A DNA stretch of 32,000 nucleotides from Paramicrosporidium saccamoebae KSL3 (Eukaryota > Fungi > Cryptomycota), in NCBI GenBank assembly GCA_002794465.1, contig MTSL01000184.1:16704-48703 (forward strand). Direction: 5' to 3'. This document shows, one piece after another, positions 581-29,424 of this stretch. The notes under the pieces were generated by a model that made no database searches, had not been told where the DNA came from, and worked only from the letters and a program-made list of their open reading frames with translations. Position 1 is the stretch's first letter. Every line of letters begins with the position of its first letter. The translations under genes were made by a program, and so were the position numbers.

Positions 581-662
581 GTAAAGACCCTCCCTCCCCG
601 GGCCGTAGTTTGTAGACTGTAAGAGTAAAGACTCTTTATCCCCGGGCCATGGTCCGTAGACT
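581..662 (-). repeat. Two tandem copies (44-nt period; 581-618 and 625-662) of a dispersed 38-nt element
   Basis: Minus strand reads AGTCTACAAACTACGGCCCGGGGAGGGAGGGTCTTTAC and AGTCTACGGACCATGGCCCGGGGATAAAGAGTCTTTAC. The second is 34/38 identical to 29387-29424. Confidence 0.85.
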
Positions 663-737
663 GCAGTCTGTGAATATACTTTATCATGGCAGTAAAGACC
701 ATTTTGCAGTCACAAAGTCTCTCTAGGTATAATTTTT

Positions 738-867
738 TATACCCCCTCACAATCCCAGTCCATCGATATACCCCTTCAGTTCCTGAATATACTCTCCCAA
801 TCTCCGCCTACGGATATACCCCTCCCCACAATCCCAGTTTATGGATATACCTCCTCACAATCAGTGG
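738..867. repeat. Degenerate intergenic tandem repeat, 5 units of 21-31 nt
   Basis: Units start TATAC at 738, 767, 788, 815 and 846. Consensus is approximately TATACCCCTCACAATCCCAGT..GGA. Confidence 0.75.
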
Positions 868-880
868 CGATTTTAATCAA

Positions 881-2370
881 TTATGCTTGATAATTAGTAG
901 AGCTAGTGGTCCCGCCCTGCCCTGTCCAATTCACGTGTTTGTAAACACCAGGATTATCAAGGAGTTCAAAAGTGTGGGCTCCAAAGTAATCGCGTTGTGC
1001 CTGTAAAAGATTCGCAGGCAGTCTCTCACAACGATAGCCATCGTAAAAGGCGAGGGCAGAGGAGAGTGCAGGCACGGGGAGGCCAATGAGGATCGATTCT
1101 GAGAGGATCAGACGCCAGCTGGGATGGGCCTGGGCGAGCGCCTGAGTAAAGAAAGAGTCAAAGAGGAGGTTTTCAAGATTCGGGTTGCGATCAAAGGCCT
1201 TTCTAATGTCTCCAAGGAACGCACTCTTGATAATGCAGCCGCCCTTCCACATGGTGGCAATGGCTCCCATGTTCAGATTCCAATTAAAAGTTTTAGAGGC
1301 CTCGCTGAACAGCATGAATCCCTGTGCGTAGGAAATAATCTTGGCTCCATACAGGGCCTTTTTTAGATGCTCCAAAATTTCAGTCTTGTCCTTTGTGAAC
1401 CCAGCAGTCTTGGGGCCGACGAGGATTTTGCTTGCACGAAGCCGCTCTTCTTTTAGGGCCGAGAGGGATCGTGCAAACACGGCCTCGCTGACCAAAGTCA
1501 CGGGGATTCCCATGTCAAGAGACGCCTCGACAGTCCACTTTCCCGTTCCCTTTTGTCCCGCAGCATCTCTTATCCTGTCCACCAGGTAATGCCCGTCCTG
1601 TTGGAACTTGAGAATATCGCTTGTAATTTGGATCAGGAAAGATTCTAATTCTGACTTGTTCCATTCCCCAAACACTGCTGACATTTCTTCATAGCCCAAA
1701 CCCAGACCATCATGCATCAGATGGAATGCCTCGCAGATTAGTTGCATATCGCCGTATTCGATCCCATTGTGCACCATTTTGACGAAATGACCGGCACCGC
1801 CCTCGCCCACCCAGTCACAGCACGGGACACCGTCTGCCTTTGCTGACACTGCTTGCAGCATTTCACGGAGATGCGGCCAAGCACCCGGAGAGCCGCCAGG
1901 CATCATGGACGGGCCATAACGCGCACCCTCCTCTCCTCCACTGACACCACAGCCTACAAAATGCACTCCCTGTGCTGACAGCGTCTTGACACGCCGTTCA
2001 GTGTCCGTGTAGAGAGAGTTTCCTCCGTCAATGATAATGTCGCCAGCAGTCAGGTGAGGCAGTAGCTGGTTGACAAAGTCGTCCACTGCACTGCCTGCCT
2101 TTACCATTAGCAGCACCCTTTTCGGTGACTTTAGCTTCTCCACCAGCTCGGAAACTGAATGCGCTCCCACAACCTTGGTGCCTGCCGCTTCATTGGCGAG
2201 GAAGGCGTCCACTTTGCTGACAGTGCGATTATATGCGCAAACTGTGTAGCCATGGTCGTCAAAGTTGAGGATCAAGTTTTGGCCCATTACAGCCAGTCCT
2301 ATCACTCCGATATCCGCCTTCCTACACAATTATTATTGCCGTTGGGCGACAATTACGCATCAGATGACAT
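881..2370 (-). CDS. GND1: 6-phosphogluconate dehydrogenase, decarboxylating (484 aa, 1 intron)
   Basis: IGVIGLAVMG, AYNRT, GHFVKMVHNGIEYGDM, QAQRDYFGAH. Exon 2370-2357 (MSSDA), 35-nt GT-AG intron 2356-2322, exon 2321-881. Confidence 0.97.
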
Positions 2371-2389
2371 TGGCATTACGAATAATTTA

Positions 2390-3418
2390 TTAATCTTTCG
2401 GAATCTCCGATTCGGGCAGGAAGGGAATATCCACTCCATTCACGGCGAGCACATTTCTGCTCAAATCAACGCAACACTGATGTCTTCTGAGCATGTCCAG
2501 TCCCAACAACATGTCAGGCCCGTCGCCCTCAATGACAGTGATTGTACATGGCAAAAAGAGGCCGCCCATCTCCAATTGCACAGAATGAACCCGACCAAGA
2601 ATGCGACTCGTCCCTACGCCCTTGGCAATTCCTGCAAAGCGCGTATCCAGCAATCTATCTAGGCCGCTGCGTTTTGCACATCGTTCCGTCACTATATTGT
2701 CAGTCGATGGTCCATAGTACTGATTGTCGTCTGAGCACCGCAGTCAACAAAGGCTTTGAGTCGATACTCGTTCACACAGCACGGAATATACAACATTGTG
2801 ACGCTTCCAAACGACTCGGGATGGTATTCCATGGCAGTGGCCAAGTTTTCTTCAACATTCTGCTGCCGGATCTGCGCTTCAATGCGTTCCTGCGACTGGG
2901 CATCAAGTGGATGGTCTGTTTGCTGACCGGGAAAGACGGACGAACGGAGCGATTGAAGGATTCGGGCAAATTCACTGGGATTGTTTTGTGCTGCCTCTAA
3001 CAGTTCAGGTCGAGACTACATCAACTTAGACAGCGCTATAAATATACTTGCTGCAAACGAGCCCGTGTAGTAGCGTCATTTAGGACATGTTGCCGGACAC
3101 GCTCAACTTCTGCGTCAATTTTTGTGGGACGGCCCTTGCGCAGAAAAAGCATGTCGTTTTCCTTGATGCCGCAATTCTGCAACGTCTTGCTGCCTTCATC
3201 GATGATTTTTCCCTCGTGGAATAGTTGAATAAAAGAAGACTCTAATCCCGTCTACTATAAACATTACCGGCGCAGTGTACCTCGGCTGCTAAAATGGACA
3301 AAAAGTCTGAAATCTATTCCATCTCAATCAGTCACTGCACCGATGCAAGTACTAGAAACTGCGGGTCCAAATCAAACGAATGCACCTGCTCTTCCTCAGT
3401 CAAAACGGTCAAAATCAT
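2390..3418 (-). CDS. DDI1: DNA damage-inducible protein 1 (UBL + helical domain + retroviral-like aspartyl protease, no UBA), 299 aa, 4 introns
   Basis: Exons 3418-3353, 3313-3281, 3251-3048, 3015-2721 and 2691-2390 splice in frame (introns 39, 29, 32, 29 nt). Motifs EYHPESFGSVTMLYI, KAFVDCGAQTTIM, RFAGIAKGVG, DMLLGLDMLRRHQCCVDL. Confidence 0.93.
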
Positions 3419-3426
3419 GGCGCCAA

Positions 3427-3431: not shown

Positions 3432-3445
3432 CACAGCCGTCATAA

Positions 3446-7133: not shown

Positions 7134-8169
7134 TCAGCAGTCCCAACAGTTTCCAAGGGGTTCTATAATCGGCTGGACAGGCTCGAAATTATTGCCCTCG
7201 GCAGGGTAGATTTGAAACTGATCATTGACATGACGAAATACGACCTCTGGATCTGCCGAGTTTGCATCGGCCATGGCATAGAATACTTTGTTGGCCAGCT
7301 TGTCACGATAATTTGACACTTTTTCCAACATGTTCAAAATAAATGGTCTCGGGCTGTGCGCCAGGTACCGGACTTTTGAACGGTCCTCCGACGGGGTTAT
7401 CCGTGTTGCTGCCCGCAGGTTCAGTCGACTAGTCTGTTCAAATGTAGTCGCAACATTACGAATGCCTTTTCGGAGTTCCTGGTCCTCGACGCATTCTCCC
7501 AACCAGCCAGAGTTGAGATGCTTAAAGTGTGTCAGTAGCTGCTCCCAATTCATCGTCTGCTTCAATCCCTCACGACAATATGTACTCAGCTGCTCCTGTG
7601 GATCGATAAGGGCGAGCAGATCAACAGCGACACGTGGTCCGTAATCATAGCCCTTGGGCGGCTTGTAGGCTGGAGATTCTCCAGATTTGTGCCAATACAT
7701 CGGACTACCCGCTTCGATGGAATCGACCAGCTCTGTCGAAAAGTCATACGGGTTGCCAGCGTGAGATATTCTGAGGATGTACTCGAACGCCGCTTTGTAA
7801 TCTCCCGCCCTTTGCAGGATCCTGTACATTTGTCGCTTTACCTCCTATACTAATTAGAATCACACCGACGAGTACAATTGATGCGTTTTCTGACAATGCC
7901 ATCATGGTTACCATCGCCTTCCGGTTAGAGTCGTTATCAGAAAATGCCCACTGCTCACTCATCACACCCACCAAGCTAGCCATCGACACACAAGTATGCT
8001 TTGACATGGTTCGCTCGATTTCAGTGGATGCAATTCCAGCAGCCAATTGCTCGAGCAGCTCAGAGTGCACCCGGTCTGGATCGCACAATGTTTTTCTACT
8101 AACCATTCTTTTAAAAACTCTCGACGCCCCGACATAGGTTAAAAGTGTAATTACAGTGAAAGGACGCAT
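7134..8169 (-). CDS. Orphan predicted secreted protein A (334 aa), paralog of 8319-9405
   Basis: Signal-peptide-like MRPFTVITLLTYVGA/SR. Exon 8169-7876, 31-nt GT-AG intron 7875-7845 with CTAAT branch, exon 7844-7134 join in frame. Aligns along its length to the neighbouring gene. No family recognised. Confidence 0.8.
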
Positions 8170-8210
8170 AATGTTGTGACGGTTTATGGGACCATTCAAG
8201 CCTTTACTAA

Positions 8211-8228
8211 TGCGTGCTGTGAACCAAT
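8211..8228. promoter_or_regulatory. CCAAT-containing motif shared with the promoter of the paralog
   Basis: TGCGTGCTGTGAACCAAT, 42-59 nt upstream of ATG 8169; 16/18 identical to 9452-9469. Confidence 0.6.
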
Positions 8229-8318
8229 AAAATGAACCGCATTTTGGGTGGCTCTTCATTCATGTTAGTTGTTCCGTACTACAGATCCTATTCCAGACTT
8301 TTTATTTATTTTGGGGCA

Positions 8319-9405
8319 CTACGCCAAGTGCGTGGCTGATCTCCAACCTCTCTGCGTCGAATTGGCTGGTTGAGCTGGTCTAGATGACTGAGCCGGTCGG
8401 ACTGATTGAGCTAGCGGAGCTGGATGAGCCGGTCTGGCTGGTTTAGAAACAATACCATTGGCAGGATAGGATACAAACTGACGATTGACGTTGCTCAATA
8501 CAGCTGATGGATCGTCCGTGTCGGCATCGACCACAGCCTGAAGCAAAGTGTTGGTCACTGCGGCAACATAGTCCTTTGCGCGCTGTAATATGTCTGTGTG
8601 TTCCTGGTTCTGGCCGCTCAGATTCTTTTCCGCAAAATGCAGCGTCCGAGATGCCGTATGCAGTCTCAGCTGACTGGCCCGCTCAAATGCAGTAACAGCA
8701 TCGTGCATAACGTCTCGGAGTGTTGGATCAGACACGCAACGTTTTACCCAGGAAGTGTTAGAACCATCAAATTCTTTCAGCAACCAAGTCCAATTTCCTA
8801 CATCCTCCAAGTCTTCGCGACACGTGTCAGACAGTTGGTCCTGAGGATCGAGAATGGTGAGCAGATCATTGATAACCATGGGCTGCCGGAATGGGTAGCC
8901 CTGAGGCTTTTGGAGGACCAACGGACCGTACATGAGATTGTCCGCGTCGAGAGATTCAAGCAGTTCCGCCGAAAAGTCGCGGGGGTTGGTGGCGCGGGCT
9001 ACTTTGAGAATGTATTCATAGGCCCTCTTGAAGCCACGGGCCCGTTTCAAAACCTGATAGACTTGTCTTGTACTCTCCTACACTAATCAGAAAAGGGACC
9101 ATCCGTACCGTTGAAACGCTGCTACTCTCAGCCAACGCGGCCAAAGTCTCCGCCACCCGTGAGAAATTGTCTGCATCCCTCCAGTCTCTACTTTCTTCAT
9201 GTATCTTATTGATCAGAGTAGCCAGCGTCACGCAGCTTTTATTCTTGTGCAAAGCTGCAGAAATATCAGAGGGTGTCCCTCCATAGATCATCTTTTCATA
9301 CAGATTCTGATGCACTTTATCAGAATCGCATTCTTTTGCGCCCAATTTAAGAAATCGACTGGCGCTGACACAAGCTAAAAGCGCAAAGATAGTAGTTAGA
9401 TGCAT
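8319..9405 (-). CDS. Orphan predicted secreted protein B (351 aa) with Pro/Ala/Gln-rich tail, paralog of 7134-8169
   Basis: Signal-peptide-like MHLTTIFALLACVSA/SR. Exon 9405-9109, 31-nt intron 9108-9078 at the homologous phase-0 position, exon 9077-8319. Confidence 0.8.
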
Positions 9406-9451
9406 AGTGCCACAGCCAGTCGCACATCTTGCTTTTAATTTGTTCTGCTAC

Positions 9452-9469
9452 TGCATGCTGCGAACCAAT
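9452..9469. promoter_or_regulatory. CCAAT-containing motif shared with the promoter of the paralog
   Basis: TGCATGCTGCGAACCAAT, 47-64 nt upstream of ATG 9405. Confidence 0.6.
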
Positions 9470-9602
9470 CAAGCATTCATGTGTACTATGAGCGTCGCGT
9501 ATTGGGGGTCACTACGATTGGTGGGCCAATCATAGGAATGACCTGATTAACAATTAATGCAGCAAGCATTAAAGGAAAAAAGGCATCAGAGCATCGACAG
9601 TC

Positions 9603-10332: not shown

Positions 10333-11970
10333 TTATTTGTGAATTCGACGTTGACGTTCCTTAATAATGCGGTCCATGCCCTTTGTACGTTTAAAGGACG
10401 GGTTGGAAGGATCCAGAGCAAAGGCAGGCTCTTCATAGACTGCCTTGAAACGTTCATCATCCACACTGACAGTGACATCCTTTCTATCCTCGTCGTCAGT
10501 GGCGTCTCCATCCACCAATAGTTCAAGACTGGCATCTGGGGCGTGTTTCCGTTTCTTGTCTTTTGACTTGGGTTCTTTCTGTCCCTTTCGCTCCTTGTTG
10601 GCATCTTTGCGAGCTTTGCGACGCGCCATGTACTTGTCGTAGGGAGTCATGTCGGTATTCTCCTTGTCAGCTTCCTCTGTAAAGGTAGCCTCCATGTGCA
10701 CATCGTCTTCATTATCGGGCTTGAGCGCCGAAGTAAAGGTGATTTGCAATTCATCGCCGTCTTCTTGTTTCTTTCCAAAAACGTTAGAGTCTCCCCCCGA
10801 GAGGAGGAGCTGACGATACTTGTCGGCATCATCTTCCTCATCCTCGTCGGTAGAGGCCAGATATGCACGTAAATCGGCCTCCTCCTGGTCCATCTTTGGC
10901 CTACCTGTGACTCTTGTGCGCTCGCAGTCATCAGCATCCCAAGTCAGCTCCACTTTGCTCATCTGTAGAGCTGCCGTCACCAGATTGGGCTTGGCGTGGT
11001 AGTTCTTTGGCAATTCTATGCAATGGTCCTTTGCAACTCCGTCAAAAGTGGTCGTGTCGGGAATGTAGCGCAAATCAATGAAATTTGCACTTTTTTCAAA
11101 CTCTGTCCCATCGCAGTTTCGATAAATGTGTGCTGCCGTCACTGCCGAATCACATTCAATCACAGCATAATAATAGCGGAGACGTTCTAGCTGGTATTTT
11201 CGCAGGGCAACCGAATCAAAATCCTCCTCTTCTTCTTGAGGAAAGTCTGCGTCCGAATCATCTGATGCCGAGTCCTCGGCCAAGTCTTCTTCCACCTTGG
11301 CCTTTTCAAACAGTTCACGAGGAGGACCTTCGAGAGCCTCACGCTGCATCCGTTCCTTGCCAAATTCACTCGGCCAAATAGTAACCGAGTTGATTGTCCC
11401 TGTGGCAGGTTTGAATCCATGCAAAAGAGTGTAAATGTCATCAGCGCGAATCTGATCCCAATCTATATTCACTAATGCGAGCCTGTGAGTCGCCTCTCCT
11501 GTGGGAATATCCTGTGCAACCAAGGGATGGTTGGACAAGACTGTATCCATGACATGATCAGACTCTGTGTCCGTATCGGTGCTCGAGTCTGTATCGGTGC
11601 TCGAGTCTGTATCGGTGCTCGAGTCTGCATCAGTGCCCAAGTCTGCATCCGTGTTCGAGTCTGTATCAGTGCTCAAGTCTTGGTCTGTATCCACACTCTC
11701 TATACCCTCTACACTCTCTACACTGTCCTCATCCTCATCCTCATCAACACCAACATTTTCCACACTCTCAGTGGCTGCTGCCTCGTCGAGACGGTAGAAA
11801 CGTTCGAGATCCTTACGCTCCCGGTCCGCTACCACTTTGCGGCCATATTTGTCCACCTTGACCGGCTTCACAAATTCCTCATCCTCAAACATCGCCTTGA
11901 ACCGGCCATCCACAGTCACCTGTGTCGCTTTTTTGCCAGCACGACGGAACCGCGGATCCACTTTGGTCAT
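10333..11970 (-). CDS. ESF1: Pre-rRNA processing protein Esf1 (545 aa)
   Basis: VDPRF, KVDKYGR, THRLALVNIDWDQIRADD, LRKYQLERLRYYYAVIEC, EFEKSANFIDLRYIPD, NUC153-type DERFKAVYEEPAFALDPSNPSFK. Confidence 0.95.
   Translation of the reverse strand: MTKVDPRFRRAGKKATQVTVDGRFKAMFEDEEFVKPVKVDKYGRKVVADRERKDLERFYRLDEAAATESVENVGVDEDEDEDSVESVEGIESVDTDQDLSTDTDSNTDADLGTDADSSTDTDSSTDTDSSTDTDTESDHVMDTVLSNHPLVAQDIPTGEATHRLALVNIDWDQIRADDIYTLLHGFKPATGTINSVTIWPSEFGKERMQREALEGPPRELFEKAKVEEDLAEDSASDDSDADFPQEEEEDFDSVALRKYQLERLRYYYAVIECDSAVTAAHIYRNCDGTEFEKSANFIDLRYIPDTTTFDGVAKDHCIELPKNYHAKPNLVTAALQMSKVELTWDADDCERTRVTGRPKMDQEEADLRAYLASTDEDEEDDADKYRQLLLSGGDSNVFGKKQEDGDELQITFTSALKPDNEDDVHMEATFTEEADKENTDMTPYDKYMARRKARKDANKERKGQKEPKSKDKKRKHAPDASLELLVDGDATDDEDRKDVTVSVDDERFKAVYEEPAFALDPSNPSFKRTKGMDRIIKERQRRIHK
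11573..11680. repeat. Coding minisatellite 6 x 18 nt in ESF1 (DSSTDT-type acidic hexapeptides)
   Basis: GTATCGGTGCTCGAGTCT x3 exact, then 3 degenerate units. Confidence 0.9.
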
Positions 11971-12449: not shown

Positions 12450-15400
12450 TCAAACATCAAAGGTGTCTGATTTCTCTTGTAGCGATAATCTCCGCATATC
12501 TGGCACTGCAACAGATGAATGTTCTTCTGACCTCCTCCGTCCCGTGTCCCAATGTTCTGTATCTGTCGCGCCTTGGTCTTGGTTATCTTTTGTGCTTTGG
12601 TCTTTATACTCGGCTGTGCTTTGATCATGGTGGCTTTTCATGTCATCTGCCATTTCATTTGTCGTGTCGCCCTGCGCTCTCTCTTCCACATCACTCCGAG
12701 CCGCCTCTACATCACTCCGAGTCGTCTTTACATCACCCCGAGCCGTCTCTATACCACCCCGAGTCGTCTCTCCCATCGTGACATTCTTTTTCGTTTCAAC
12801 CGGCATCTTGGCCGTGGCCACGTGGATAATCGACTCTTTAAAGTTTGGCATCACCGGATCCAACAGTCTCCACGTCTCATCCCATAGTGTCGATTTTTCA
12901 TCGGGACCCGACGGCCTTAGATAACCGGCTGCAGCCATTACCATCAGCATATTCTTAATGGTCTCAGGAATGGATTCCTTTAACAAATCACCGCGTCCTC
13001 GAAGAAAGGTCAACATGTGTGTCAGGAGAGTCGTCATTAGGGTGGTCGTAGTCATCAGTGTGGTCGTGGTGCCCTCATAATTACAATCAGCCTGTGGCTC
13101 TGCAAAGAGGACAGACAGATTGGACAACAAAATTCGCGTTACCACCGACGTTGATCGTACCTGCAATTCTTCCAACCCCTCCAAGGTGCGCAACTCTGGT
13201 CGTTGTAATTCTTCCAGTAGAGGGAACAAGACCAGTTGGAATTCTTCATACAATGTTTCCACACCTTGCATCCCAAAGTCCACCCCCAGAATAATCCTTT
13301 GCAGCAACGGCAGGGCCTGTTGACGGATCTCCCTAATCGGGTGGTAACATTGCTGTGCCACGGCACAATGCACCGGAATGATATAATCAGGCCACACCCG
13401 ATCCAGGGGGATGGTGTTGGAGACGGCAAGGCGTCTCACGTTGGCCTCTAACAGAGCAAATTTGCCAAGGGCCTGGCCAGCAAGTTCGACAGGCGAGGGC
13501 ACAATGTCTCCAGAAGCCGACAATGGAGAAGAGGGCAGCGGAGCAGCAGTGGAAGAGGCCACAAAACCGCTCAGCAAATCAACATATTCAGAGTAAAATT
13601 CGAGGGGGAAGAGCAAATCATTTTCGCGTACAATGGTGGTCAAAAGACCAAAGGAATAAGGTCCACAGGAACGAGAACGACCAGCCAGAGCGAGGACTGT
13701 AAAGTAATGGGGCCAAATGGCAGTACCGTGGAGAATAGGCGGATCGAGTTCGACAATGCGCAGAACAATTGACAGTGCGGGTTCAGCGAGATGTTGGAAG
13801 GACTCGGGGGGCACATAACACAACAGTTGGAAGAACTGCACCACCTCCTTCTGCATCTCTGGTCGATCGGCAAAACGCAGCGATAGTCGTCCCAACCCGA
13901 GAATAACGTGTTCTCGGATAGCCACGGGAACGCTCAAATCTTTGGCCAACTCGGAGAAGCGCGTAAAAAGGACAGTCCAGAAGACGGACATGCGATCACG
14001 ATTAATCCAGGCGGTGTGTACCACCAGATCAACCAAAAACACCAACGTCTCCACTTCCCAACCCAATGGGCGTGTAACCACTAATTGTTCGGCCATGGCT
14101 GCAATCAACTGCTTCAAGGAGGCCTCTGGTAGGAAACGCGAGTCACGCAAAATCTCCTCCAACTTGCAGGTGCGCACAAACTCAGTGGCGCGATCGCGAG
14201 TCTCCACATCCACCCCCGACGCATCTCCTGGACTTGACACCAAATATTGAGATAGGGCTGAAAAGAGCCCCGACTCGTTACGATCGCTCCGGGGCGAATT
14301 AGCTGTGGACCGAGATATCACCCCTGACAGACCGCCTGCCTCTACTTCAAATGTCGCCAATGTGACAATTGACGATTGTACCAACAACAACACGTGGCGT
14401 ACAAAGGATCGCCAGGCCTCAGCCAGCTGGGAGCCATGGAGACGATACAGATCAAAGTAACATTTAACCAGCGTTCGGAATAGCTCAGATCGTGCCAAAT
14501 ATCGGGGTAACTGATTCCCTGCAGGATTTGATGCAATCTCGGAAAACGCCAAACATTCCACCAACACTGCAGAGAGCTCATCCAAATGCGTCGCATCCAG
14601 GAAGCGGCCCGACAAATTTCCCAGTTCAAATAGCCCCCTCACTGCCAATCGTGATCCCGTATCGCTCTTTGGCGATAAAATCACTAGTAATTAGCATAAA
14701 ACCCATAGTGTTACAGGAGCGGAAACAGGTCAGAAGTGGACCCCACAATAGTTTCATAACATCAGATACATAGCCGTCCAGTAGAAACACGGGCGGTACT
14801 TCGGAAGAGGGATACTTTTTCAATTGCTCATTCCAGGTGTAATGAAAGGCCGTCTCGCCGGCTTGCTCTTCAGGTAGAACAATTTCTTTGCTTTGGATAG
14901 CATGAAAAATGCGGCGCAGGAAAACTTCGTCAAAGCTGGCTCCGTCATTGATACCGCGATTGTTGCGGATAAAGTCGTCCACAGTCATCCGGTGTCGGAC
15001 CTGCTTGTTGTGCTGATCCGTGTTCAACATGATAATGCTATAGGTAAGCACAAAGACTGCGTCTTCACTGCGAAAGATGGCGTCGGTTTGTGCGCGATAG
15101 TACACCTGAGCCAGTGCCTCCATGATGCGACTGATCTGTTGTGACTCCCCAGGTAAACGGAAACTTTCCAACACCACCCGCAATGCCTCGTCAATTTGCA
15201 GTCCCGATAAATTAAAATCGGCCAGAAACTCGTTCAATAAATCCAAATTGGCTGGTTTGGAGACAATTTCACCAATGACGCGCTTGTCCAGTCCAGCAGT
15301 GCGACGCAGATACTGTGCTGTCTCTTTTGGAGTAGCCGGTGTGCTAGTCAGACCATTTTCTTCCAGAAAGGCAAATGCATCTTTTGGGTTCTGATTGAAC

Positions 15401-16944
15401 AGCTCTGCTGAATGACGCATCAGTAGCTTTAACTTGCGGTCGGTGCACAGTCTTTCTGGATCTGGAGTGCATTCTGCCACTGTACCAGCTCCATCTAGGG
15501 CCTGTAGAACCATAATGATAACTTCCAAGGCAAAGAAATAGTCTTGGCCCGCATTCTGTTTCGGTTCCAGTTGCACTGTGGCCACCAAACCAGCGACAAA
15601 TTCCGTCAGCGTATAACCAAACCGTGGATTGCACTCGTATAGGACGTACATGTCTGCCAAAAAGGTCGGATCCAGACAGAAATGCGCCAAAATGTCCAAA
15701 TAGTATTCCCGTGAAACACGTGGCTGCTTCCCAGGAGGCGGCTTATGGATCAGCAATGTCACCAATGTGTAAATGAACAGCTCAGTTGCAGCCAATAAAC
15801 GACGTCGGAACCGTCCAAAGACGGCCAATACTGCCTCGTGCAGAGTGGTCGTCAGCAGAGGCGACTCGTTCAATAGCAGTTGCACCAACACCCTTGTTAG
15901 TCTGGTGGAAATCAAATCCCAAACCAGACCTAAGGACGGCAGTTGCTCCTGATTTTTCTCCACAAAGTCAGTCAGCACTAATAGACAAAGAGACCGCATC
16001 CGATCCGTATTTCGACTCTCTCCGACCTCCAACAGGCGGATCAGATGCGCAAGTAATTCCATCACCAACGCCATCGAATAGGGCGCAACTGTCTCTATCG
16101 GCGTCTCTGCCACCATAATGTCCTGAATTTCCGTGTCACCAAGACTGGATATAGGGCTCTTTGCCGACAAGGGCGGTCGTAATTCCGTTTCGGCCGTCTC
16201 CCCACGCTCATTGGACTTTTCCAATGACTTTTCCTTCTCAAGTTCGGCTTCCAATGCGGCCAATGCGGGTGGTAACGGCTCCGGATCATCAGCTCGTGTC
16301 CCAGGATAGGAAATTTTCAGTGCTCCCATCATCGGCATAGCCATGGTAAAACCTTCATCCCGTACCCTTTCCAGCAAAATCGCACAAAGCTCCATACATG
16401 CCACCTCGGTCTGGCGTCGGAACAGCTCTCCAATCCGCGGCATAACGCACATGGAGAATGCCAATTCTACCACTGCACAAACCTCCGCATCACCCAGCAT
16501 TCGACCCAGCGGGGAGCGCATGGCAAGCAGAACAAAGTCGAGTAATCGTTGCAACGTCGTTTCATCACCACTAAGTTCGCCTACATCCACCCGACACTGC
16601 ACAATCATCATGACCAATCGTCGAAACTCCAAAATTGTCTCCTCCTCTGCAAACAGAGCGAAAAAGTCTCTTCGAAACAGACGCGTCACGCATGACAGAG
16701 CGCCTCCCAATATAAGACAGCTGCACTCGGGGGTGGCAAAGACGGCCCGGAATGGGGCTAAACATGCATTCAGACTGGGCACGTGGGTTGACCGTAGCTG
16801 TCTTCGTAGCGTGCTGAACAGGTGCGTCGTCTCTGCCAATTTGTTGTCATCACTAAAAAACCGCACTCCTGTTCCTTGTCGTTTAATAACCTGCAACATG
16901 TGGAATAGCTCCGGCTGGAGCAGTACTGCAATACTGCGTTCCAT
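12450..16944 (-). CDS. GEA2: Large Sec7-domain ARF guanine-nucleotide exchange factor, GBF1/Gea type (1487 aa, 1 intron)
   Basis: Sec7 domain with glutamic finger FRLPGESQQISR and YSIIMLNTDQHN, upstream DCB/HUS-like helical region, HDS region QCYHPIREIRQQAL. The 31-nt intron 14714-14684 joins the two ORFs in frame. Confidence 0.9.
12688..12771. repeat. Coding minisatellite 4 x 21 nt in the GBF1/GEA C-terminal tail
   Basis: ACATCACTCCGAGCCGCCTCT-like units encoding (T/A)R(G/S)(D/G)(V/I)(E/K)x heptads. Confidence 0.85.
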
Positions 16945-17245
16945 AATAATACGAATAATCTATTAAATTAACTTTTTGAGAGGGGTGAGAATTCTTACGA
17001 CATGAGTGGAATGTTGTTATGAGGATTATTAGGGTTATGAGAGCTATAGAATCTATGAAAATTACGTGAGCTATGTAAAGTCTTGCGAGCTTTTGCTTCC
17101 AATAAAGGACATTACCTCTGAACAGCTCCTCTGATCAACACCTCTAATCAACGGTTAGTGTCCCAATCATAATCTCCATGTTTTAACTACACCCCCCCCG
17201 TGCCATACCATAGTACATCACACTGTATAAAATATAAAAATCTTG

Positions 17246-19783
17246 TTAATCTAGGGCGGTGCCAATAGAATTCCCACATTGCACCAGCGTTTCCAAGTGT
17301 TCCAAACTATTGGAAATCAGATCGGCATCAAAGACCACCGTGTTTGGGGGAAAGAGAACCACAATGGTCGATCCACCAAAGGCAAAATATCCCAACTCGT
17401 CCATGCGGGCAATATGCGCGCCGCCCGTGGCCGTAATGATGATGGAACCAACCATCATGGCGCCAATGGCAACAAATGCGACCTTTCCGTAATGTGTCGT
17501 CTCCAGCAATGCCACCGTACGAGCATTTTCAGTGTAGACATCAATACGCTGACGCACGGCCATGGGATTTACAGTGAAATATGTCCCGGGGATGTGATAG
17601 TACAATGACAATTCTCCATCCACCGGACTATGGAACCGATGATAGTCTTGGGGCGCCAGTCGACACACCATCACTGCCCCTCCCACATAATACTCAGCTA
17701 ATCGCTCGTCTTTCAATAGAGAGGCAATGCTAAAATTGGCGCCTTTAATCCATAATCGCGTGGCCTGATCAATCGTTGCAAAACAGTTCAATCGACAGTC
17801 AGCCGGTGACACACAAATGCGCGGATCTGGTGACGCCACCGTCCTTGCACCGGGCTTCAGTTTCCGGTAAAAGAACTCATTAAAGGTACGGAAAGAGGAA
17901 AGTGGTTGAAGGATCTCGTCCACATTCAACTTGTGATAGCGGATAAATTCGGGAATGTTCTTGACACTGCCTGGATCATCAAATTTACGGCCCTGTTTCA
18001 GCGTCAGCGTCTGGAAGATTTGTCGCACCATGTAAGAGTCAACAGCCCGATTAGACGCTCCGTATTGATGCATCCAACGGATCCCCAGCCGAATGTATGT
18101 CGGCATGCGTTCTTCTAGCAGCTTTCCTGTCCGTCTATCCTGCACCAAAATGTTGCCATTGTTCTTGCCTATCCGGTAGCCCCCAAAGCTCATAAAGGAC
18201 AACAGTTTCATGAACCATTTCCGTGACGCATAATCTTCTGTAATAAAGCCACCCATCACAAAGCGATCCAACTTGCCCGAATCCTTGGCTGCACAAATGG
18301 CCAAATGTGTAATTACATCAATGTCCTCCCGTTGACCCGCCGCAAAGTGTCGGTTGCAGATGGGACACGTCCGCACCAGCACAATATTCTCCTCTTCATG
18401 TTCTGGCAGACGCGCCTTTACTGTCAGCGCCTCCAATGCGGACACTATGTTTCCAATCTCAATTTCGCCCTCCATGTCCACATCCAATTTCTTTATAATC
18501 ACATCCAGCGTGTCTTCAGACAGCGTACTTCCAATCGACTCTAACATTGTCGTCAGCTCAATCCGATTCAACTTTCCATTATCGTCATGGTCATATTGTT
18601 TGGCCAGCACCTCCCAAAAGTTCTTCCGCAGCACGTCATAAGAGATGAAACACGCCTTTACCAGTAGACAACTGTCATTGAATGCATTTGGCGTCGCCAG
18701 TCGGAGCGTCAGGGCCAGCTTTTGAATTTCATTTGGTCGATCCAGCAGCGACGACGCCTTGATGTTTGTGCTGCCCAAACACACGTTATAGCTCAACTTG
18801 TCATAATCATAGACCGAAAAGGTAATGTAATAGGAGGCCTCGGATTCTTTCACGGTAAAGAATAGGCGTTCCTTCCACACGGGATTCACTGTCCGCTTGA
18901 CAACTTTGGTTTTAAACGACTGTTTCCCAAAACTAATGACCACAAAAGGATTGTTTTGGTAATGCACTCGCAGCGTGCGTTTCTGCCTCGGCAGGTTCTG
19001 TGCCGTCACAATTTCCAAGGACACCAAGCCTTTGACGTCCATGGGCGACGGCAGGCGGTCAACAGACACTGTCGAGCCAATGTCTATGTCATCCTCACTC
19101 CTCCCCATGCCCTCCCTCTCCGCCACAATTAGTGTGCTCATCTTGTCTGTTCGCAGCACCGTCACCGGACTGCCTGCCAGCGTAAACTTTTCCAAAAAAT
19201 CCATTCGATGACTTCCCTCTGGCTCTGGTAGCGACCCTAAACATTAATCCAAAAAAGGAAGGTACCCGCACTGGATGAATGATCCAGATTGTAGGTGGGG
19301 GTGGTTTGGACTTCCTCCGAGATGGTGGTGCATAGGGAGGGACAGGGCGACGGTTGGATGGACCGACCCTTTGAATCGAGCTTCTCCACGCGGATGAGCA
19401 GCGTGGCGGCAATAATATCGCCCCCACGGAGCAGCTCAACAATCAGATGATTGTCCATGGTGGACACCAAAAAGGATATGGGGATCTCTGCTTCTCCAAT
19501 AAGAACTCGCTCCTCCGAATTGGGTTTGCTTCGAAACAGCTCCACCAGCAGTAAATGATGACCGTCGCGCACAAAAAACTCGGGCTGGCGGGTAGGCGCT
19601 GTGGTGTGCAACTCTACAAAGGCGCTCTGGTCACGGTCCAAATAGAACCAGATTGCATAACGCGGGTCATCAGTGTTGGGTGTGTAGAGTTCCTGTCGTT
19701 CATTCCGCTCAGTCACTGTCAATGCTACACAATTACCAGCACTGTCAAGACGACCAACCGTCAATGCGCAAAAGAACACCCAT
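17246..19783 (-). CDS. PSD2: Phosphatidylserine decarboxylase proenzyme 2 (C2-C2-EF-hand-PSD; 824 aa, 2 introns)
   Basis: Exons 19783-19759, 19724-19266 and 19236-17246 (introns 34 and 29 nt) splice in frame. C2 domains, EF-hand DHDDNGKLNRIE, FNEFFYRKLK, CRLAPQDYHRFH, autocleavage site FAFGGST. Confidence 0.95.
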
Positions 19784-19847
19784 TAACCGTTTCCTATTGG
19801 CTTGCTCGTTTGCACATTTCCCCTTTGGGTTGCTTATGAGGGTATTA

Positions 19848-19889
19848 AAAGAGCTTTGAAAGAGTTTTGAAAGAATTTGAAGAATTTTT
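19848..19889. repeat. Short degenerate 10-11-nt tandem repeat upstream of PSD2
   Basis: AAAGAGCTTTG AAAGAGTTTTG AAAGAATTTG AAGAATTTTT. Confidence 0.6.
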
Positions 19890-20108
19890 TAGATTTAGTA
19901 AGAATAGCATCTGTGGAAATCATAAATAGGTGATTTACCGTTGGCGATTTGACATTATAAAGTGACTAGATACAAGACAACTTTGAGCAATAGCTCAATC
20001 TACAACCTGTGGATAGCAGCTCAAGGCCAGTAATAGCTTTTCAGCAGGTTGCACACACGACGTAATGTTTATTTCTCAACAAGTCAACAACTTGACAATT
20101 CTACAAAA

Positions 20109-21911
20109 CTATGAAAAATATTCAATCCCAAGATCAGAGACGTATTGCTTCAGCATTGCCATAAACTTATTCTTCCGAGCCGCTCTTACCGCCGCTTCCT
20201 GAAAGTTGGTCTTGTACTCCACGGCTAGGGCAACCACAATCTTTTCCTCCACAACTTCAAACTTGGAGATTTCCACCTTGCCTGTATAGTCTTTGGGCTC
20301 GGATTGCGCAAATTCGGCAAGTCGATCTCGTAGGGTCCAGACATTGTCAATAGAAGTTGTATCAGCCAGGGAAATTTCAATCGTGTCTGACTGAGTGGCA
20401 CTGCGCCGGATGTTGTAAATATTCTTTCCAGAAAGCGCACTGTTGGGAATGTAGACGGCGGTGCCGTCCCAGCGGCGGAAGATGGTGGTAAAGATTTCCA
20501 CCGTCTCCACTGTCAAAAATTCGTCGTCTACAACGACACGGTCGCCCACATCGTAGGCATGCTCGACAAAGACAAAAATCATGGATTCAAAGCAGCTCTT
20601 TGCGGTGCTCTGGAACAGGAACCCAAAGGCCGTCCAGAGCAGTCCATAGATGGCAAAGATGGCAGCTCCACTAATGTTGAAGATGGGCACTGAAAAGGTG
20701 ATTGTGAAAAAGACGGCCACCGCCAACATGATTCCTCCAAGCTTCCTTATAATGTTATTGTTGTTGAGTATGCCCTTGGCCACTGCCTTGCGCTGCTGGT
20801 AGACGTCGAGCACTGCGTCTTTAATCTCTGTGCGGTCAAGATCTCCATGGCCCGCCTTGTCAAACACTCGGAAAGATTCTTCCAAATCTGTCGTCTCAAA
20901 ATAATTGGCAAAATCATCAATGGTCAGATAATCCCGGTTTGTGGGCACCAACTTTTCGTACAGATTGGCAGCCAGGTCTGAGGCGCGCTTCTCGCTGACC
21001 AGTTCACTGAGACGGTCTCGAATGAGATATACCTCGGTTCCCCGCTCAATCTTAATCTTTTTTCCAGGATGGCGAACTGCAGCATGCAGCTTGGTAATGA
21101 CCTGGAAGCGTACATTTAATGCATTAATGCGATCTTCATAAGCCATCCGGTGGAAATTAACCTTGACTAGTTCCACCAGGTAGTTGGCCAATGCATAAAA
21201 GACAGAAAAGATGGCCATCACTAACACGAGACACTCGGCATAGAACCATTCGTTCTGCACTGGTTTAATATCAGCCACAGCCTCGGCAGCGGGCTTCACA
21301 GGCGCCTTACCCAACAGACTACCACCGACAGCATTGATGAAATTGGTGCGATAGAGAAGAGAAGCTCCAGCAACCCCAAGGACAATTAGCCAGATCGCAA
21401 AGGCAAAATAACTCCGGGCCGAGACAAGATGCGCAATGGTGCGTTGTGTAGAGACTGACGGCGTATGGTGTAGCCATTTCATCAACTGCAACATTCTCGC
21501 TGGGAGGGACGAAACTAGCCATTCCACCAACAGAAAGGACATGTATGCAACATAGACAAAAAGACTGATTCGGATAAATTCCATCTGCTCATTGCCCAAT
21601 GGAGAGCCAATTTTGACTTCTGAAAACGTATATTCGGGAAAGCGACCGCACAGCCATATGGCAAATGCCGGTACGAGCATGAGAAATGCCATCACAAACC
21701 CCCAAACGGTCACAGAGACAATGGAGGGCGCATCCTTTGGCGCATTCATCGCCTGCTCAACTTCCATTGTCGAAGATTCATCTGGGCCCTGCATCTCACC
21801 CTCGATCGCACCCTCTGGGAGGGTTTCCTTGGCCTGTACTTGCGGCGTCGTGGCTATCGACGTTGGGGCACGCGTGCCACCTAGTTCGACATCTTGCAGT
21901 CCGTCTGACAT
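20109..21911 (-). CDS. Eukaryotic-type MscS-family mechanosensitive ion channel (Msy1/2-like, EF-hand-like segment), 600 aa
   Basis: Multiple N-terminal TM segments, NFHRMAYEDRI, FDKAGHGDL, FVFVEHAYDVGDRV, IFTTIFRRWDG, IYNIRRS. Confidence 0.9.
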   Translation of the reverse strand: MSDGLQDVELGGTRAPTSIATTPQVQAKETLPEGAIEGEMQGPDESSTMEVEQAMNAPKDAPSIVSVTVWGFVMAFLMLVPAFAIWLCGRFPEYTFSEVKIGSPLGNEQMEFIRISLFVYVAYMSFLLVEWLVSSLPARMLQLMKWLHHTPSVSTQRTIAHLVSARSYFAFAIWLIVLGVAGASLLYRTNFINAVGGSLLGKAPVKPAAEAVADIKPVQNEWFYAECLVLVMAIFSVFYALANYLVELVKVNFHRMAYEDRINALNVRFQVITKLHAAVRHPGKKIKIERGTEVYLIRDRLSELVSEKRASDLAANLYEKLVPTNRDYLTIDDFANYFETTDLEESFRVFDKAGHGDLDRTEIKDAVLDVYQQRKAVAKGILNNNNIIRKLGGIMLAVAVFFTITFSVPIFNISGAAIFAIYGLLWTAFGFLFQSTAKSCFESMIFVFVEHAYDVGDRVVVDDEFLTVETVEIFTTIFRRWDGTAVYIPNSALSGKNIYNIRRSATQSDTIEISLADTTSIDNVWTLRDRLAEFAQSEPKDYTGKVEISKFEVVEEKIVVALAVEYKTNFQEAAVRAARKNKFMAMLKQYVSDLGIEYFS

Positions 21912-21987
21912 GACGCAATCACGATCCTCCGATGACTTTCACCACCCGATAGGTCGATCCGAAACCTGCCTCAAAAGCGGCTCTCCC

Positions 21988-22068
21988 ATTGGTCGGGCCG
22001 TGAACCAATAGCAAAATGGCAATTTGTCCAATTTTAAAGTCGAATTTTAATCGGAATTCGCGCGCGTT
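21988..22068. promoter_or_regulatory. Bidirectional MscS/MCM6 promoter: two opposed CCAAT boxes plus a CG-rich G1/S-type element
   Basis: ATTGG at 21988-21992, CCAAT at 22005-22009, and AATTCGCGCGCGTT at 22055-22068 just before ATG 22073. Confidence 0.55.
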
Positions 22069-22072
22069 CGTC

Positions 22073-24589: not shown

Positions 24590-24615
24590 CGCGCTCAGCG
24601 AACATTGAATTTTGT

Positions 24616-24791
24616 TTGAGAAATTGGATCTTATTATTCGGGGACTTGGATCCTATTATTTGAGAAATGGGATCTTATCATTTGAGAAATGGGACCTTAT
24701 CATTTGAGAAATTGAATCTTATCATTTGAGGAGCTGAATCTTACAAGTTGAGGAACTGAATCTTACAAGTTGAGGAATTGGATCCTATATT
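24616..24791. repeat. Intergenic minisatellite 8 x 22 nt
   Basis: Units at 24616, 24638, 24660, 24682, 24704, 24726, 24748 and 24770. Consensus TTGAGAAATTGRATCTTATCAT; contiguous, no spacers. Confidence 0.92.
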
Positions 24792-26422: not shown

Positions 26423-26551
26423 CATTGGCGTTTACTGAGAGGTCTGTAGTAAAGACTCTTTATTTAAGATTTTATTGTGTGGTGGGAGTATCATTGAGTA
26501 GAGTAGTGGGGGGGAGACGCTAAAACATAGGTAGAGTGCCAATCTTTCCAT

Positions 26552-26586
26552 CCCTCGCCCCTCGCCCTTTGCCTCTTGCCTCTCGC
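26552..26586. repeat. Degenerate 5 x 7-nt microsatellite between IMA1 and SDH2
   Basis: CCCTCGC CCCTCGC CCTTTGC CTCTTGC CTCTCGC. Confidence 0.7.
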
Positions 26587-26717
26587 TTATGACTCTTTCA
26601 TTTTTGATCCACCATGCATCACTTTTAGCTAACCATTCTACTACTACTGACCCACAATCGTCAAGAGTCTCTTTATTCTTGGCTCATCTGTAAAACGGCA
26701 GATTGATACTCGTGGCT

Positions 26718-27533
26718 TTAAGAGGATTCAGACGCCATGGACTTTTTAATCTCTGCAATGGCCTTTGCCGGGTTTAGTCCCTTGGGGCAGGTACGCGTGC
26801 AGTTCATAATTGTGTGACATCGATAGACCGAGAACGGATCTTGTAGTTTAGCCCTTCGCTCTTTACCGTTTTCGTCTCTGCTGTCATTCATCCACCGGTA
26901 CGCCTGCAGCAGCGCTGCTGGTCCTAGATATTTGTCTCCGTTCCACCAGTAGCTTGGACAGCTTGTCGAGCAGCACGCACACAAAATGCATTCGTACAGT
27001 CCGTCCAGTTTTTTCCTGTCGGCGATGGATTGTCGGTTCTCCTGGCCAGCAGGCTGGGATTTCTGTTGTAGCCATGGTTCGATGGCGCGGTACTGGCGGT
27101 AAAAGTTGGTCATGTCTGGAACAAGGTCACGCACTACATGCATATGCGGCAGTGGGTAGATTTTCATCGTTCCGGAAGCGTCGATTCGACAGGTACAGGC
27201 GAGGGTGTTCTGTCCGTTAATGTTCATGGCGCAACTGCCACAGATGCCCTCTCGACAAGAGCGACGGAACGTCAGCGTTGGGTCCTGCTCATTCTTAATC
27301 TTTATCAATGCATCCAAGACCATGGGTCCACACGCATTCAAGTCCACTTCATATGTTTGCTGCCATGGCTTCTTCTCAGGAGTGTCTGGGTTCTACAATT
27401 AGCACCAGCCACTGAGCAGTACCCAGCGGTACACGGAAAATGTCTTGAGACGCGACTGGCGCGGCGCAGGACGCACAGTAGCCGAGTAGCAGCGCGAATG
27501 GAAAAGGTTTGGTCGGAGTAGAGAGACGCGCAT
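26718..27533 (-). CDS. SDH2: Succinate dehydrogenase iron-sulfur subunit, mitochondrial (261 aa, 1 intron)
   Basis: Arg/Ser-rich acid-free presequence [70 protein letters not shown]. 30-nt intron 27422-27393. Confidence 0.97.
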
Positions 27534-27547
27534 TAAAAAGAGAGTGA

Positions 27548-27552
27548 CCAAT
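27548..27552 (+). promoter_or_regulatory. CCAAT box 14 nt upstream of the SDH2 start
   Basis: GACCAATCAG. Respiratory genes are classical HAP2/3/5 targets in fungi. Confidence 0.5.
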
Positions 27553-27599
27553 CAGGAATGATCATCTGCGACATCCGTATATCGCAGAGAGAGGGCCAT

Positions 27600-28421
27600 T
27601 TATTTACAGGCAACGTTGAAAAATGGATGTTGCAGCAACATGTCTACAGTGTAACGCCGGTCTGCATAATAAAAAGACAATAGGCCACGTTTTCCGTAGA
27701 GCATGTCGAACAGGGCTGAAGGAAATGCAAAAGGAGGATCCGATGGAAACTTTATATCCCTGGCATTTCCTTTGGCATCCTCGAGAATTCGATAGGGAAA
27801 ATGTCCATAGTGGAACTCTGCTGGAAGCTTAAAGTAGCGGGCAAAAATGTAAAAGATGGTGACGCCAACAGACCACCAGTCGCTTGCCTCAGTCAAGGGC
27901 ATGCGGACAGAAGGAAGAAGGACTTCGGGTGACATTGTTCTTGGGGTCCCCACGTTAGGTTTTGCACAATGTATGGGACTCGCCAATCCAAGATCAATCA
28001 GCCACACCAGACGTCCCTCGCGAACCACATTTTCCGGCTTGACATCCATATGCAGGAATCCTGCGCAGTGCAGCGCTCCCACCGCCAAGATTAGTTGTCG
28101 ACAAATCTCCACAAGATCCGTATAGGACAGGCCATCCTCCCGCCTATATGAGAGAAGATCACCATCGCACGCCTCCAAATACATAATCTCACGCCGGGCA
28201 GGGAATTGCATTGTTGGCTGCAGAATTTGGGGGCAGTATCGCACGTGAGAGAGGACCCCAATCTCTGTCTCAAAGTCGGAGGGATTATGGAAATGCTTAA
28301 TAACCACTTTGGCCTTTGAGAGTTGCACAAATCGCAAGCTGGACTGACCGCTGTTAATCTTGTTCAGCGTGTCGGCGTGGATCATTAACAAAGTCAGAAA
28401 GACAAGATTTGTGAGGATCAT
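27600..28421 (-). CDS. Divergent Ser/Thr protein kinase with N-terminal signal-peptide-like segment (273 aa)
   Basis: VVIK, alphaC ETE, HMDVKPEN, IDLGLA, GTPRTMSPE, DWWSVG, LLQHPFF. N-terminus MILTNLVFLTLLMIHA/D. Confidence 0.88.
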   Translation of the reverse strand: MILTNLVFLTLLMIHADTLNKINSGQSSLRFVQLSKAKVVIKHFHNPSDFETEIGVLSHVRYCPQILQPTMQFPARREIMYLEACDGDLLSYRREDGLSYTDLVEICRQLILAVGALHCAGFLHMDVKPENVVREGRLVWLIDLGLASPIHCAKPNVGTPRTMSPEVLLPSVRMPLTEASDWWSVGVTIFYIFARYFKLPAEFHYGHFPYRILEDAKGNARDIKFPSDPPFAFPSALFDMLYGKRGLLSFYYADRRYTVDMLLQHPFFNVACK

Positions 28422-28545
28422 GCCGCACTTTCGTGTCTGTCAATTGACCTTTTCAGGACTAGATATCAGATCAGCTAAATAGGGAGATAAAGACAAATTT
28501 ATTTCACATTATGGGGTGTGCGATGTGAGACATGAGATGGTATAT

Positions 28546-28579
28546 CCACGGACCGGGGATTTTAATAAAGGGTCTTTAC
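28546..28579 (+). promoter_or_regulatory. Variant copy of the dispersed 38-nt element upstream of SKP1
   Basis: CCACGGACCGGGGAT(TTTAAT)AAAGGGTCTTTAC, ending 21 nt before ATG 28601. Confidence 0.6.
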
Positions 28580-28600
28580 TACACACATAAATCTACGGCC

Positions 28601-29182
28601 ATGACAGATTCTGCAAAGATCACACTCGTTACAGAAGATGGACAACGCGTCTTATTGGAAAGAAAGAGTGCTCAGCAAATTGGAATTTTGAAAACAATGA
28701 TGAACTCTCCGAACAATATCTTTCCAGTGCCGGCCGTCAAAAGCACCATCCTCACCAAGGTTATCGAATTCTTGGACCAACATGCAGACGACCCCGTTCC
28801 ATTACCCTCCAAGCAACCCATTGCTTCCAGAGACGGCGATGATGATGACGATGAGGGCGACGACGACGCAGACGTCAGCACTCTAACCCTTGACTCGTCC
28901 GTTTCTAGCGACGACGAGTACATCTATGAGGACTACCTCGCCTCTGTAACTCCCTGGGACCAGCGTTTCCTTGACGTCGACCTACCCACATTGATAGAAT
29001 TGACCAAGGCGGCCAACTACCTGAATGTCCCGGTTCTGTTGGACTTGTGTTGTCGGACAATTGCAAGGCAGATGACTGGATTAAAGGCGGAGGAGCTGAG
29101 GAAGAAATTTAATCTGCCAAATGACTTTACGCCCGAAGAAGAGGCCAAGATGGCCGCCGAATTTGCTTGGATTGAAGAATAA
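28601..29182 (+). CDS. SKP1: SCF E3 ligase adaptor Skp1 (193 aa)
   Basis: ITLVTEDG, PVPAVKSTILTKVIEF, WDQRFLDVD, LIELTKAANYLNVPVLLDLCCRTIA, LRKKFNLPNDFTPEEE. Start at ATG 28601. Confidence 0.95.
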   Translation: MTDSAKITLVTEDGQRVLLERKSAQQIGILKTMMNSPNNIFPVPAVKSTILTKVIEFLDQHADDPVPLPSKQPIASRDGDDDDDEGDDDADVSTLTLDSSVSSDDEYIYEDYLASVTPWDQRFLDVDLPTLIELTKAANYLNVPVLLDLCCRTIARQMTGLKAEELRKKFNLPNDFTPEEEAKMAAEFAWIEE

Positions 29183-29386
29183 AGTTGTATTGTAATCATG
29201 TACCGTGACAAGCAAGGAACTTTAAGAGAGTGCTCCCAAGGATTCAGAAAACTAGTGAAAGGATATATCCGTGGACCAAGAATATCAATGAAAGAGTGTA
29301 TCCATGAATCACGAATAAGAGGTTTCTTGATGATTGTGAGAAAGTATATCATACAATGCTGTATCTGTGAACCCCTCCCAATAAAG

Positions 29387-29424
29387 AGTCTATGGACTAC
29401 GGCCCGGGGATAAGGAGTCTTTAC
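29387..29424 (+). promoter_or_regulatory. Copy of the dispersed 38-nt element upstream of GET1
   Basis: AGTCTATGGACTACGGCCCGGGGATAAGGAGTCTTTAC, ending 22 nt before ATG 29447. Confidence 0.75.

Follow-up and report, generated by a model that had tools for sequence, protein, structure and literature searches.

We report that a short DNA element located directly upstream of three unrelated genes, coding for a rhodanese, SKP1 and GET1, in the amoeba-parasitic fungus Paramicrosporidium saccamoebae is on balance best understood as a promoter module that lies close to its genes and serves a subset of them in this organism, with recent copying between promoters. The analyzed DNA (hereafter, the window) is the last 32 kb of contig MTSL01000184.1 (48,703 nt; assembly GCA_002794465.1). 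Element scans covered the window plus 9.8 kb more of the same contig, i.e., 41.8 kb of the 7.3 Mb genome, and the comparison DNA from relatives amounted to ~30 kb. The initial annotation, made from the sequence alone, offered three explanations: a lineage-specific core promoter or 5' module, a composite terminator-promoter, and a relic mobile element. The first emerged as the best of the three, as the copies are in sense orientation, their boxes recur at orthologous promoters and the GET1 promoter is collinear in relatives.

The P. saccamoebae genome (MTSL00000000) has 76% gene space and 0.53% repeats, mostly simple, and the genome paper does not mention promoters or motifs (Quandt et al. 2017). 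No cis-regulatory signal for Paramicrosporidium was found in the papers searched, and searches for the 8-mer described below and for rozellid promoter motifs returned nothing relevant. Pfam scans together with deposited models gave ~20 genes in the window. The initially proposed identities of the three downstream genes held: those of rhodanese and SKP1 were upheld, and a spliced GET1 model from ATG 29447 matched PF04420 positions 3–152 of 159.

Copies of the element upstream of three genes

The full 38-nt consensus matched exactly at 625–662 (minus strand) and 29387–29424 (plus strand) and had no match in 100 dinucleotide shuffles, which bears out the copies first described before the rhodanese gene (in tandem) and GET1. 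The copies, including partial ones, are as follows.

625–662, minus strand: copy A, distal tandem copy upstream of rhodanese, AGTCTACGGACCATGGCCCGGGGATAAAGAGTCTTTAC; exact consensus (nhmmer E = 4e-14)
574–618, minus strand: copy B, proximal copy of the tandem; rhodanese ATG 552 follows the end of its GTCTTTAC at a distance of 28 nt
29380–29431, plus strand: copy C with flanks; AATAAAG box at 29380–29386, GTCTTTAC at 29417–29424, GET1 ATG at 29447
28546–28582, plus strand: copy D, truncated variant upstream of SKP1; core AATAAAGGGTCTTTACT; ATG 21 nt downstream
26446–26467, minus strand: half copy E, AATAAAGAGTCTTTACTACAGAC in the convergent Ima1/SDHB 3' spacer; 15-nt exact part at 26449–26463
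692–699, minus strand: lone core F, GTCTTTAC, 42 nt downstream of a canonical TATAAAAA box

The three full copies (581–618 and 625–662 on the minus strand, 29387–29424 on the plus strand) showed a mutual identity of 79–89%. Counted by eye, copies A and C agree at 34 of 38 positions, and A and B, as well as B and C, at 30 of 38; the distal rhodanese copy A is nearer to GET1 copy C, 29 kb away, than to its tandem neighbor B. In a repeat comparison, the tandem pair was detected at 44-nt spacing with 79% identity (80% over 45 nt), and A versus C with 89% (34/38). The similarity extends 7 nt beyond the 3' end initially assigned (CCACMAAC), and the 3' flank CCACCAAC is common to copies B and C. An nhmmer profile of the three copies recovered each of them (E ~1e-14), the SKP1 variant at 28546–28582 (E = 1.7e-4) and the half copy (E = 0.48), with no other significant match in the window or the additional 9.8 kb. 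The SKP1 variant does carry the 6-nt insertion attributed to it: 28546–28579 corresponds to consensus positions 11–38 (26/28 identical) plus the insertion, and the first 10 nt are replaced by GGTATATC. The 15-nt half copy and the core at 692–699 were also present as described.

The distance from the end of GTCTTTAC to the ATG is 28 nt for rhodanese (ATG 552, minus strand), 21 nt for SKP1 (ATG 28601) and 22 nt for GET1 (ATG 29447), the same values as first noted, and all gene-proximal copies are sense-oriented toward the start codon. GTCTTTAC was observed seven times in the window versus 0.54 expected, and six of the seven occurrences fall in intergenic DNA, which makes up 12.4% of the window. 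The sole genic occurrence lies within a 21-nt coding repeat of GBF1 (12688–12769).

The 3' half of the element is palindromic (TAAAGA-G-TCTTTA). An internal direct repeat had been noticed as AGTCT; the repeat is real but longer, ATAARGAGTCT. By motif definitions that are post hoc, a TATA-like motif is found 31–45 nt upstream of every GTCTTTAC; in copy B, the place of the ATAAAG box is taken by GGGAGG. The 5' half of the element contains upstream ATGs (e.g., ACCATGG in copy A), and no ATG is present between GTCTTTAC and the start codon at the gene-proximal copies. RNA fold z-scores ranged from -0.98 to +1.09, none of them indicating a stable structure; no Rfam match to the element was found even at E <= 1, and no tRNA was detected.

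Start codon of the rhodanese gene

The deposited rhodanese has 157 aa (229–702) and starts at ATG 702, such that both element copies are translated, in different frames. This 157-aa model is on record and the 107-aa form that begins at ATG 552 is not. The true start is probably the ATG at 550–552 (minus strand), giving a protein of 107 aa, and the GenBank start is probably too far upstream. Alternatively, the repeats may be coding, in line with the GenBank model, and add 50 residues to the N terminus, e.g., as an organelle targeting peptide. The reading frame from ATG 702, used in the deposited model, is open, and the extension would be rich in Ser, Thr, Arg and Lys with a single acidic residue. 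However, in the 157-aa model, the Pfam rhodanese domain is not reached until residue 58, the tandem copies are read in different frames, and the same DNA is non-coding upstream of GET1, with a stop in the frame of the ATG. We regard a coding extension as very improbable.

Conservation in metagenomic relatives

A search with SKP1 detected metagenomic relatives at 88, 77, 68, 62, 60 and 59% identity, and the contigs compared were L004, L007, L005, L008, L129 and L130 (SKP1 amino acid identity to the window is 88% in L004 and 62% in L008). The gene order SDHB, kinase, SKP1, GET1 is kept in the relatives. Between the window and the L004/L006 lineage, identity at four-fold sites was 0.44–0.66 (~58%), and unconstrained spacers no longer align.

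The proximal promoter of GET1 is collinear in the window, L004 and L008. Its two boxes, [AG][AG]TAAA[GT] and GTCTTTAC (GTCTAC in L004), have starts separated by exactly 37 nt in each of the three lineages, whereas the 27-nt spacer between them is not conserved. The second box ends 22 nt (window), 22 nt (L004) and 33 nt (L008) before the ATG, and the extra 160 nt of the P. saccamoebae GET1 spacer sits upstream of copy C. This collinearity shows that copy C is not an insertion but the old promoter of the gene. At SKP1, the surrounding DNA cannot be aligned with L004, yet the 17-nt core AATAAAGNGTCTTTACT matches there at 16 of 17 positions, a score reached by 0 of 300 shuffles; copy A compared with the L004 SKP1 core gave 18/20, again reached by 0 of 300. 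In L005, TTCTTTACC is located 2 nt before the SKP1 ATG. Altogether, only ~8 + 7 nt of the element are conserved between lineages, and the remainder is lineage-specific; the initial view that the element is too long for a single transcription factor site is fair.

Several further comparisons concerned the same promoters. A scan of JGI metagenomes with the full element ACYAYGGCCCGGGGANNNRGRGTCTTTAC gave no matches, and with the 16-nt core at least 120 single random matches, among which the matches listed did not include any with element context. L004 showed no significant shared element of its own between the promoters of SKP1 and GET1 (in 163 of 300 shuffles the score was as good). The sister-lineage rhodanese contig, L006, begins inside codon 8, and comparison at this gene covers the part from there on; a 6PGD search toward the sister-lineage rhodanese spacer returned no close relative. 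In the L004 SKP1 promoter (2515–2583), two weak partial profile matches (E = 1.2 and 1.9) are located 44 nt apart, core then GGGGCCAGGGATAATGGGCT, which hints at a degenerate tandem pair there too.

A separate non-coding block between kinase and SKP1 (28422–28516) is ~95% identical to L004, versus ~58% at four-fold sites. It is partly kept in L007 (TCAGCTAAAT..GATAAA), contains stops in every frame, had no hit in Rfam at E <= 1, and holds GTCTTTAT directed at the kinase ATG, 66 nt away.

Copying, insertion or constraint

Neutral identity is ~58% but the copies are 79–89% alike, which points to recent copying, gene conversion or strong constraint and not to neutral retention. The copies may have been recently duplicated or homogenized, or they may be jointly constrained by a lineage-specific factor. 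In this context, we considered whether the element could be largely neutral, either a short repeat in dispersed copies or a promoter-sized mobile cassette, which spreads by ectopic gene conversion or copy-paste and resides near gene starts where insertions are tolerated in a 76% genic genome. Such a repeat would account for the similarity of the copies relative to the neutral level of the sister lineage and for the closeness of A to the distant C; moreover, P. saccamoebae has other lineage-specific spacer expansions (22-nt repeats at 24593–24788, the GGTATATCC array at 742–870, and 30277–30372), and its relatives have much shorter orthologous spacers. Near-identical short copies at unlinked intergenic sites that exceed neutral similarity are also a feature of miniature inverted-repeat transposable elements and other short dispersed repeats. 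However, there are no terminal inverted repeats (the ends AGTCTA and TCTTTAC are not complementary, and CCCGGG and TAAAGA-G-TCTTTA are the sole internal symmetry) and no target-site duplication in the flanks (GACTGC/TCTTAC, TCTTAC/CACCAA, ATAAAG/CACAAA). The five promoter copies uniformly face the gene, SKP1 retains the core in different lineages, and L004 and L008 have an occupied GET1 site, with both boxes in place and collinear. The low repeat content given in the genome paper does not favor a dispersed repeat either. We consider this explanation unlikely. Thus, the initial suggestion of a mobile relic finds no support in anatomy, and the check proposed with it, for target-site duplications and empty orthologous sites, revealed neither; that recent copying or conversion is still needed is the part that stands.

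Two of the expanded spacers are worth describing. The MCM6-Ima1 spacer is filled by a 22-nt unit, TTTGAGAAATGGGATCTTATCA, repeated in tandem about nine times (24593–24788), and is 30 nt long in L005. The convergent GET1/HLH spacer (30044–30552) has ~510 nt versus ~150 nt in L004 and contains a 29-nt repeat pair (30277–30305, 30344–30372), two AGTCTAYNNAC-like words (30379 and 30470) and a poly-G run.

The half copy and transcript ends

Half copy E reads GTAGTAAAGACT on the plus strand, 25 nt after the Ima1 stop codon. GTA[G/A]TAAAGACT is kept in L004 at the same place, with GTAATAAAGACT just after the Ima1 stop. The simplest reading, and a likely one, is that half copy E is the Ima1 poly(A) signal. 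The same evidence bears on the proposal that the whole element serves the upstream gene as a poly(A) site or composite terminator, possibly bidirectional given its palindromic TAAAGA-G-TCTTTA: half copy E coincides with the conserved A[A/G]TAAAGACT, the 3' end of SDHB has AATAAAGAGACTCT, and copies A, B and C are located 200–300 nt downstream of a same-strand gene (6PGD or SKP1). Read-through of poly(A) signals has been documented in Microsporidia (PMC2803860). AATAAAG flanks or lies within copies C, D and E, in line with the initial remark that several copies contain AATAAA or ATAAA, but A and B have no AATAAA. The upstream genes also have signals of their own, at or near the stop codon: AATAAA overlaps the SKP1 stop in the window, L004, L005 and L007, and 6PGD has ATTAAA 6 nt after its stop. 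In addition, copy D follows a divergently transcribed gene and has nothing to terminate, and the AATAAAGAG context is not general across 20 3' ends. A terminator function, one of the three original options, is therefore quite improbable.

A related possibility is suggested by analogy. In budding yeast, Reb1 opens promoters and blocks read-through polymerase, and the element might be a site for a putative general regulatory factor that acts in the same two ways. Sites at tandem junctions, at one divergent promoter and in one convergent spacer would fit such a factor better than a pure core promoter, and the core-to-ATG distance is flexible between lineages. On the other hand, most gene junctions in the window have no element, and to our knowledge its sequence matches no known site. 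We view this reading as improbable.

A second motif and other promoter signals

The rhodanese, SKP1 and GET1 promoters also share GGTATATCC followed by RYRRAC, often with GATTGTGAGG before it, a motif that was not seen in the initial annotation. Exact GGTATATCC occurs only at 812 and 843 (minus strand) and 28539 (plus strand) in the scanned DNA. The corresponding features are as follows.

724–870, minus strand: second-motif array, four to five units of GATTGTGAGG..GGTATATCC-RYRRAC upstream of rhodanese
28539–28547, plus strand: GGTATATCC fused to copy D; TATAT starts 31 nt before GTCTTTAC
29261–29360, plus strand: GGTATATCC-like motifs upstream of copy C, namely GGATATATCCGTGGAC, GTGTATCCATGAATC and GATTGTGAGAAAGTATATCATACAAT

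A perfect palindromic TATA box, GGTATAAAAAATTATACC, is present at 724–741 (minus strand), with the lone GTCTTTAC core (692–699) 42 nt downstream, and AGGGG, similar to a stress response element (STRE), precedes three GGTATATC motifs of the upstream array. Elsewhere, several of the ~17 gene starts that have no element have CCAAT boxes; in the divergent promoters at 21912–22015, 9406–9602 and 31291–31511, CCAAT boxes (e.g., GACCAATGGGAG, GGCCAATCATAGG and AGCCAATCAGAG) are found instead of the element. We also noticed what we take to be resemblances to forkhead (TGTTTAC), GATA (GATAAG), STRE (AGGGG by GGTATATCC) and HomolD (TGTGACTG, 708–715) sites. These were set aside, each being a one-mismatch or single-occurrence match.

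Other genes and gene models in the window

Besides rhodanese, SKP1 and GET1, the genes in the window include 6PGD, a DDI1-like protein, septin, a Cdc48-like AAA protein, LOG, ESF1, GBF1, PSD, MscS, MCM6, Ima1, SDHB, a kinase, an HLH protein and RMP1. Two window-encoded proteins are on record on MTSL01000184.1 only. Some deposited models look fused: one 2855-aa product (12450–21911) spans the GBF1/Sec7, phosphatidylserine decarboxylase and MscS frames, and a 470-aa product (26718–28385) joins the kinase to SDHB, which are separate genes in relatives. The gene at 7134–9405 has no Pfam match and contains an internal duplication with 1245-nt spacing (7436/8681 and 7587/8832) and up to 84% identity. 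In-frame coding tandem repeats were found in ESF1 (11551–11694, 18 nt) and in GBF1, the 21-nt repeat mentioned above.

Discussion

The short boxes appear to be under selection at orthologous promoters, which argues for a cis-regulatory role near the transcription start. In the promoter module that we favor, the functional parts would be two short boxes, an ATAAAG-type TATA-like box and GTCTTTAC(Y) 21–28 nt before the start codon, with GGTATATCC or TATA-like motifs located further upstream. GTCTTTAC(Y) probably marks or directly precedes the transcription start. The TATA-like motif 31–45 nt upstream of it, the ATGs in the element's 5' half and the absence of an ATG between the box and the start codon would fit initiation at or just after this box, which would result in 5' untranslated regions (UTRs) of ~20–30 nt. 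The boxes would be old in the clade at GET1 and SKP1. By contrast, the full 38–45 nt similarity, including the GGCCCGGGG spacer, would be specific to P. saccamoebae and derived from recent copying of cassettes between promoters, with a tandem duplication possibly at work at rhodanese and, between this gene and GET1, either copy-paste or ectopic gene conversion.

Several observations weigh against a promoter module. The element is found at three of ~20 genes in 41.8 kb, and the ~17 other gene starts of the window and the further 9.8 kb of contig have no copy. Half copy E is in a convergent 3' spacer and not upstream of a gene, and copy B is missing its ATAAAG box. In the distant lineages L007, L129 and L130, only loose CTTTA-type matches were seen. 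The distance from the core to the SKP1 ATG varies (21 nt in the window, 94 nt in L004, 2 nt in L005), and thus a factor-binding site fits better at this gene than a fixed start-site element. It should be noted, too, that the box definitions and the 37-nt offset were set after seeing the data, and the chance of ~1e-3 per lineage is indicative only. Finally, it is from sequence that we infer promoter activity, where transcription starts and how the copying took place.

A bolder version of the copying process is that ectopic gene conversion or copy-paste keeps a promoter-sized cassette near-identical between unlinked genes without transposon hallmarks, and that this cassette may double as a read-through boundary. 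We consider this doubtful; if true, a parasite from an early-diverging fungal lineage with a very compact genome would possess a promoter/insulator unit that is mobile or evolves in concert.

The closest parallel by clade is found in Microsporidia, where 5' UTRs are very short, below ~7 nt, and promoter signals lie proximal to the start codon (Peyretaillade et al. 2009, PMC2803860). These signals, a CCC- or GGG-like triplet plus an AAATTT-like box, are present at most genes within ~15 nt of the ATG (PMC2803860). They resemble the element in that, in compact genomes of a common wider clade, short conserved DNA occupies the last tens of nt ahead of the start codon, in that a TATA-like A/T box is located upstream of a second box, and in that both help to correct mispredicted start codons. 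However, the element occurs at 3 of ~20 genes, ends 21–28 nt from the ATG, has another sequence and is a near-identical 38–45 nt cassette, once in tandem. A CCC/GGG triplet in the last 15 nt before the ATG was found only at rhodanese (CCCC, -12 to -9), and neither SKP1 nor GET1 has one; the element's own CCCGGGG is more than 35 nt upstream of the ATG. Since sequence, position and fraction of genes all differ, we do not file the element among the microsporidian signals.

A TATA box with an initiator is another possible comparison. The element may share with it two boxes at a constrained distance, to judge from the 37 nt seen at GET1 in each of three lineages under post hoc motif definitions, and an A/T-rich box, here ATAAAG or TATAT, is upstream of a pyrimidine-rich box by the presumed start. 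Nevertheless, the ATAAAG box has 1–2 mismatches to TATAWAWR, GTCTTTAC does not fit YYANWYY, and the offset exceeds the classical 30 nt. The HomolD box of fission yeast ribosomal protein gene promoters is a proximal box that replaces or aids TATA near the start site. The element is similar to it in being a proximal box specific to a gene subset near a presumed start site, but its sequence and gene set are unrelated. We view the element as a new example of proximal promoter motifs in general, unusual in its spread as a cassette, and not as a new kind of biology.

A recognizable proximal promoter module would help to fix start codons, as is illustrated by the deposited rhodanese model, in which two copies seem to be translated. 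For the lineage that lies between Rozella and Microsporidia, such a module would offer a first entry point to the study of transcription initiation. The contrast between boxes that are conserved between lineages and whole cassettes that are homogenized within one genome would make these promoters a small, clean case for the study of promoter copying in compact genomes.

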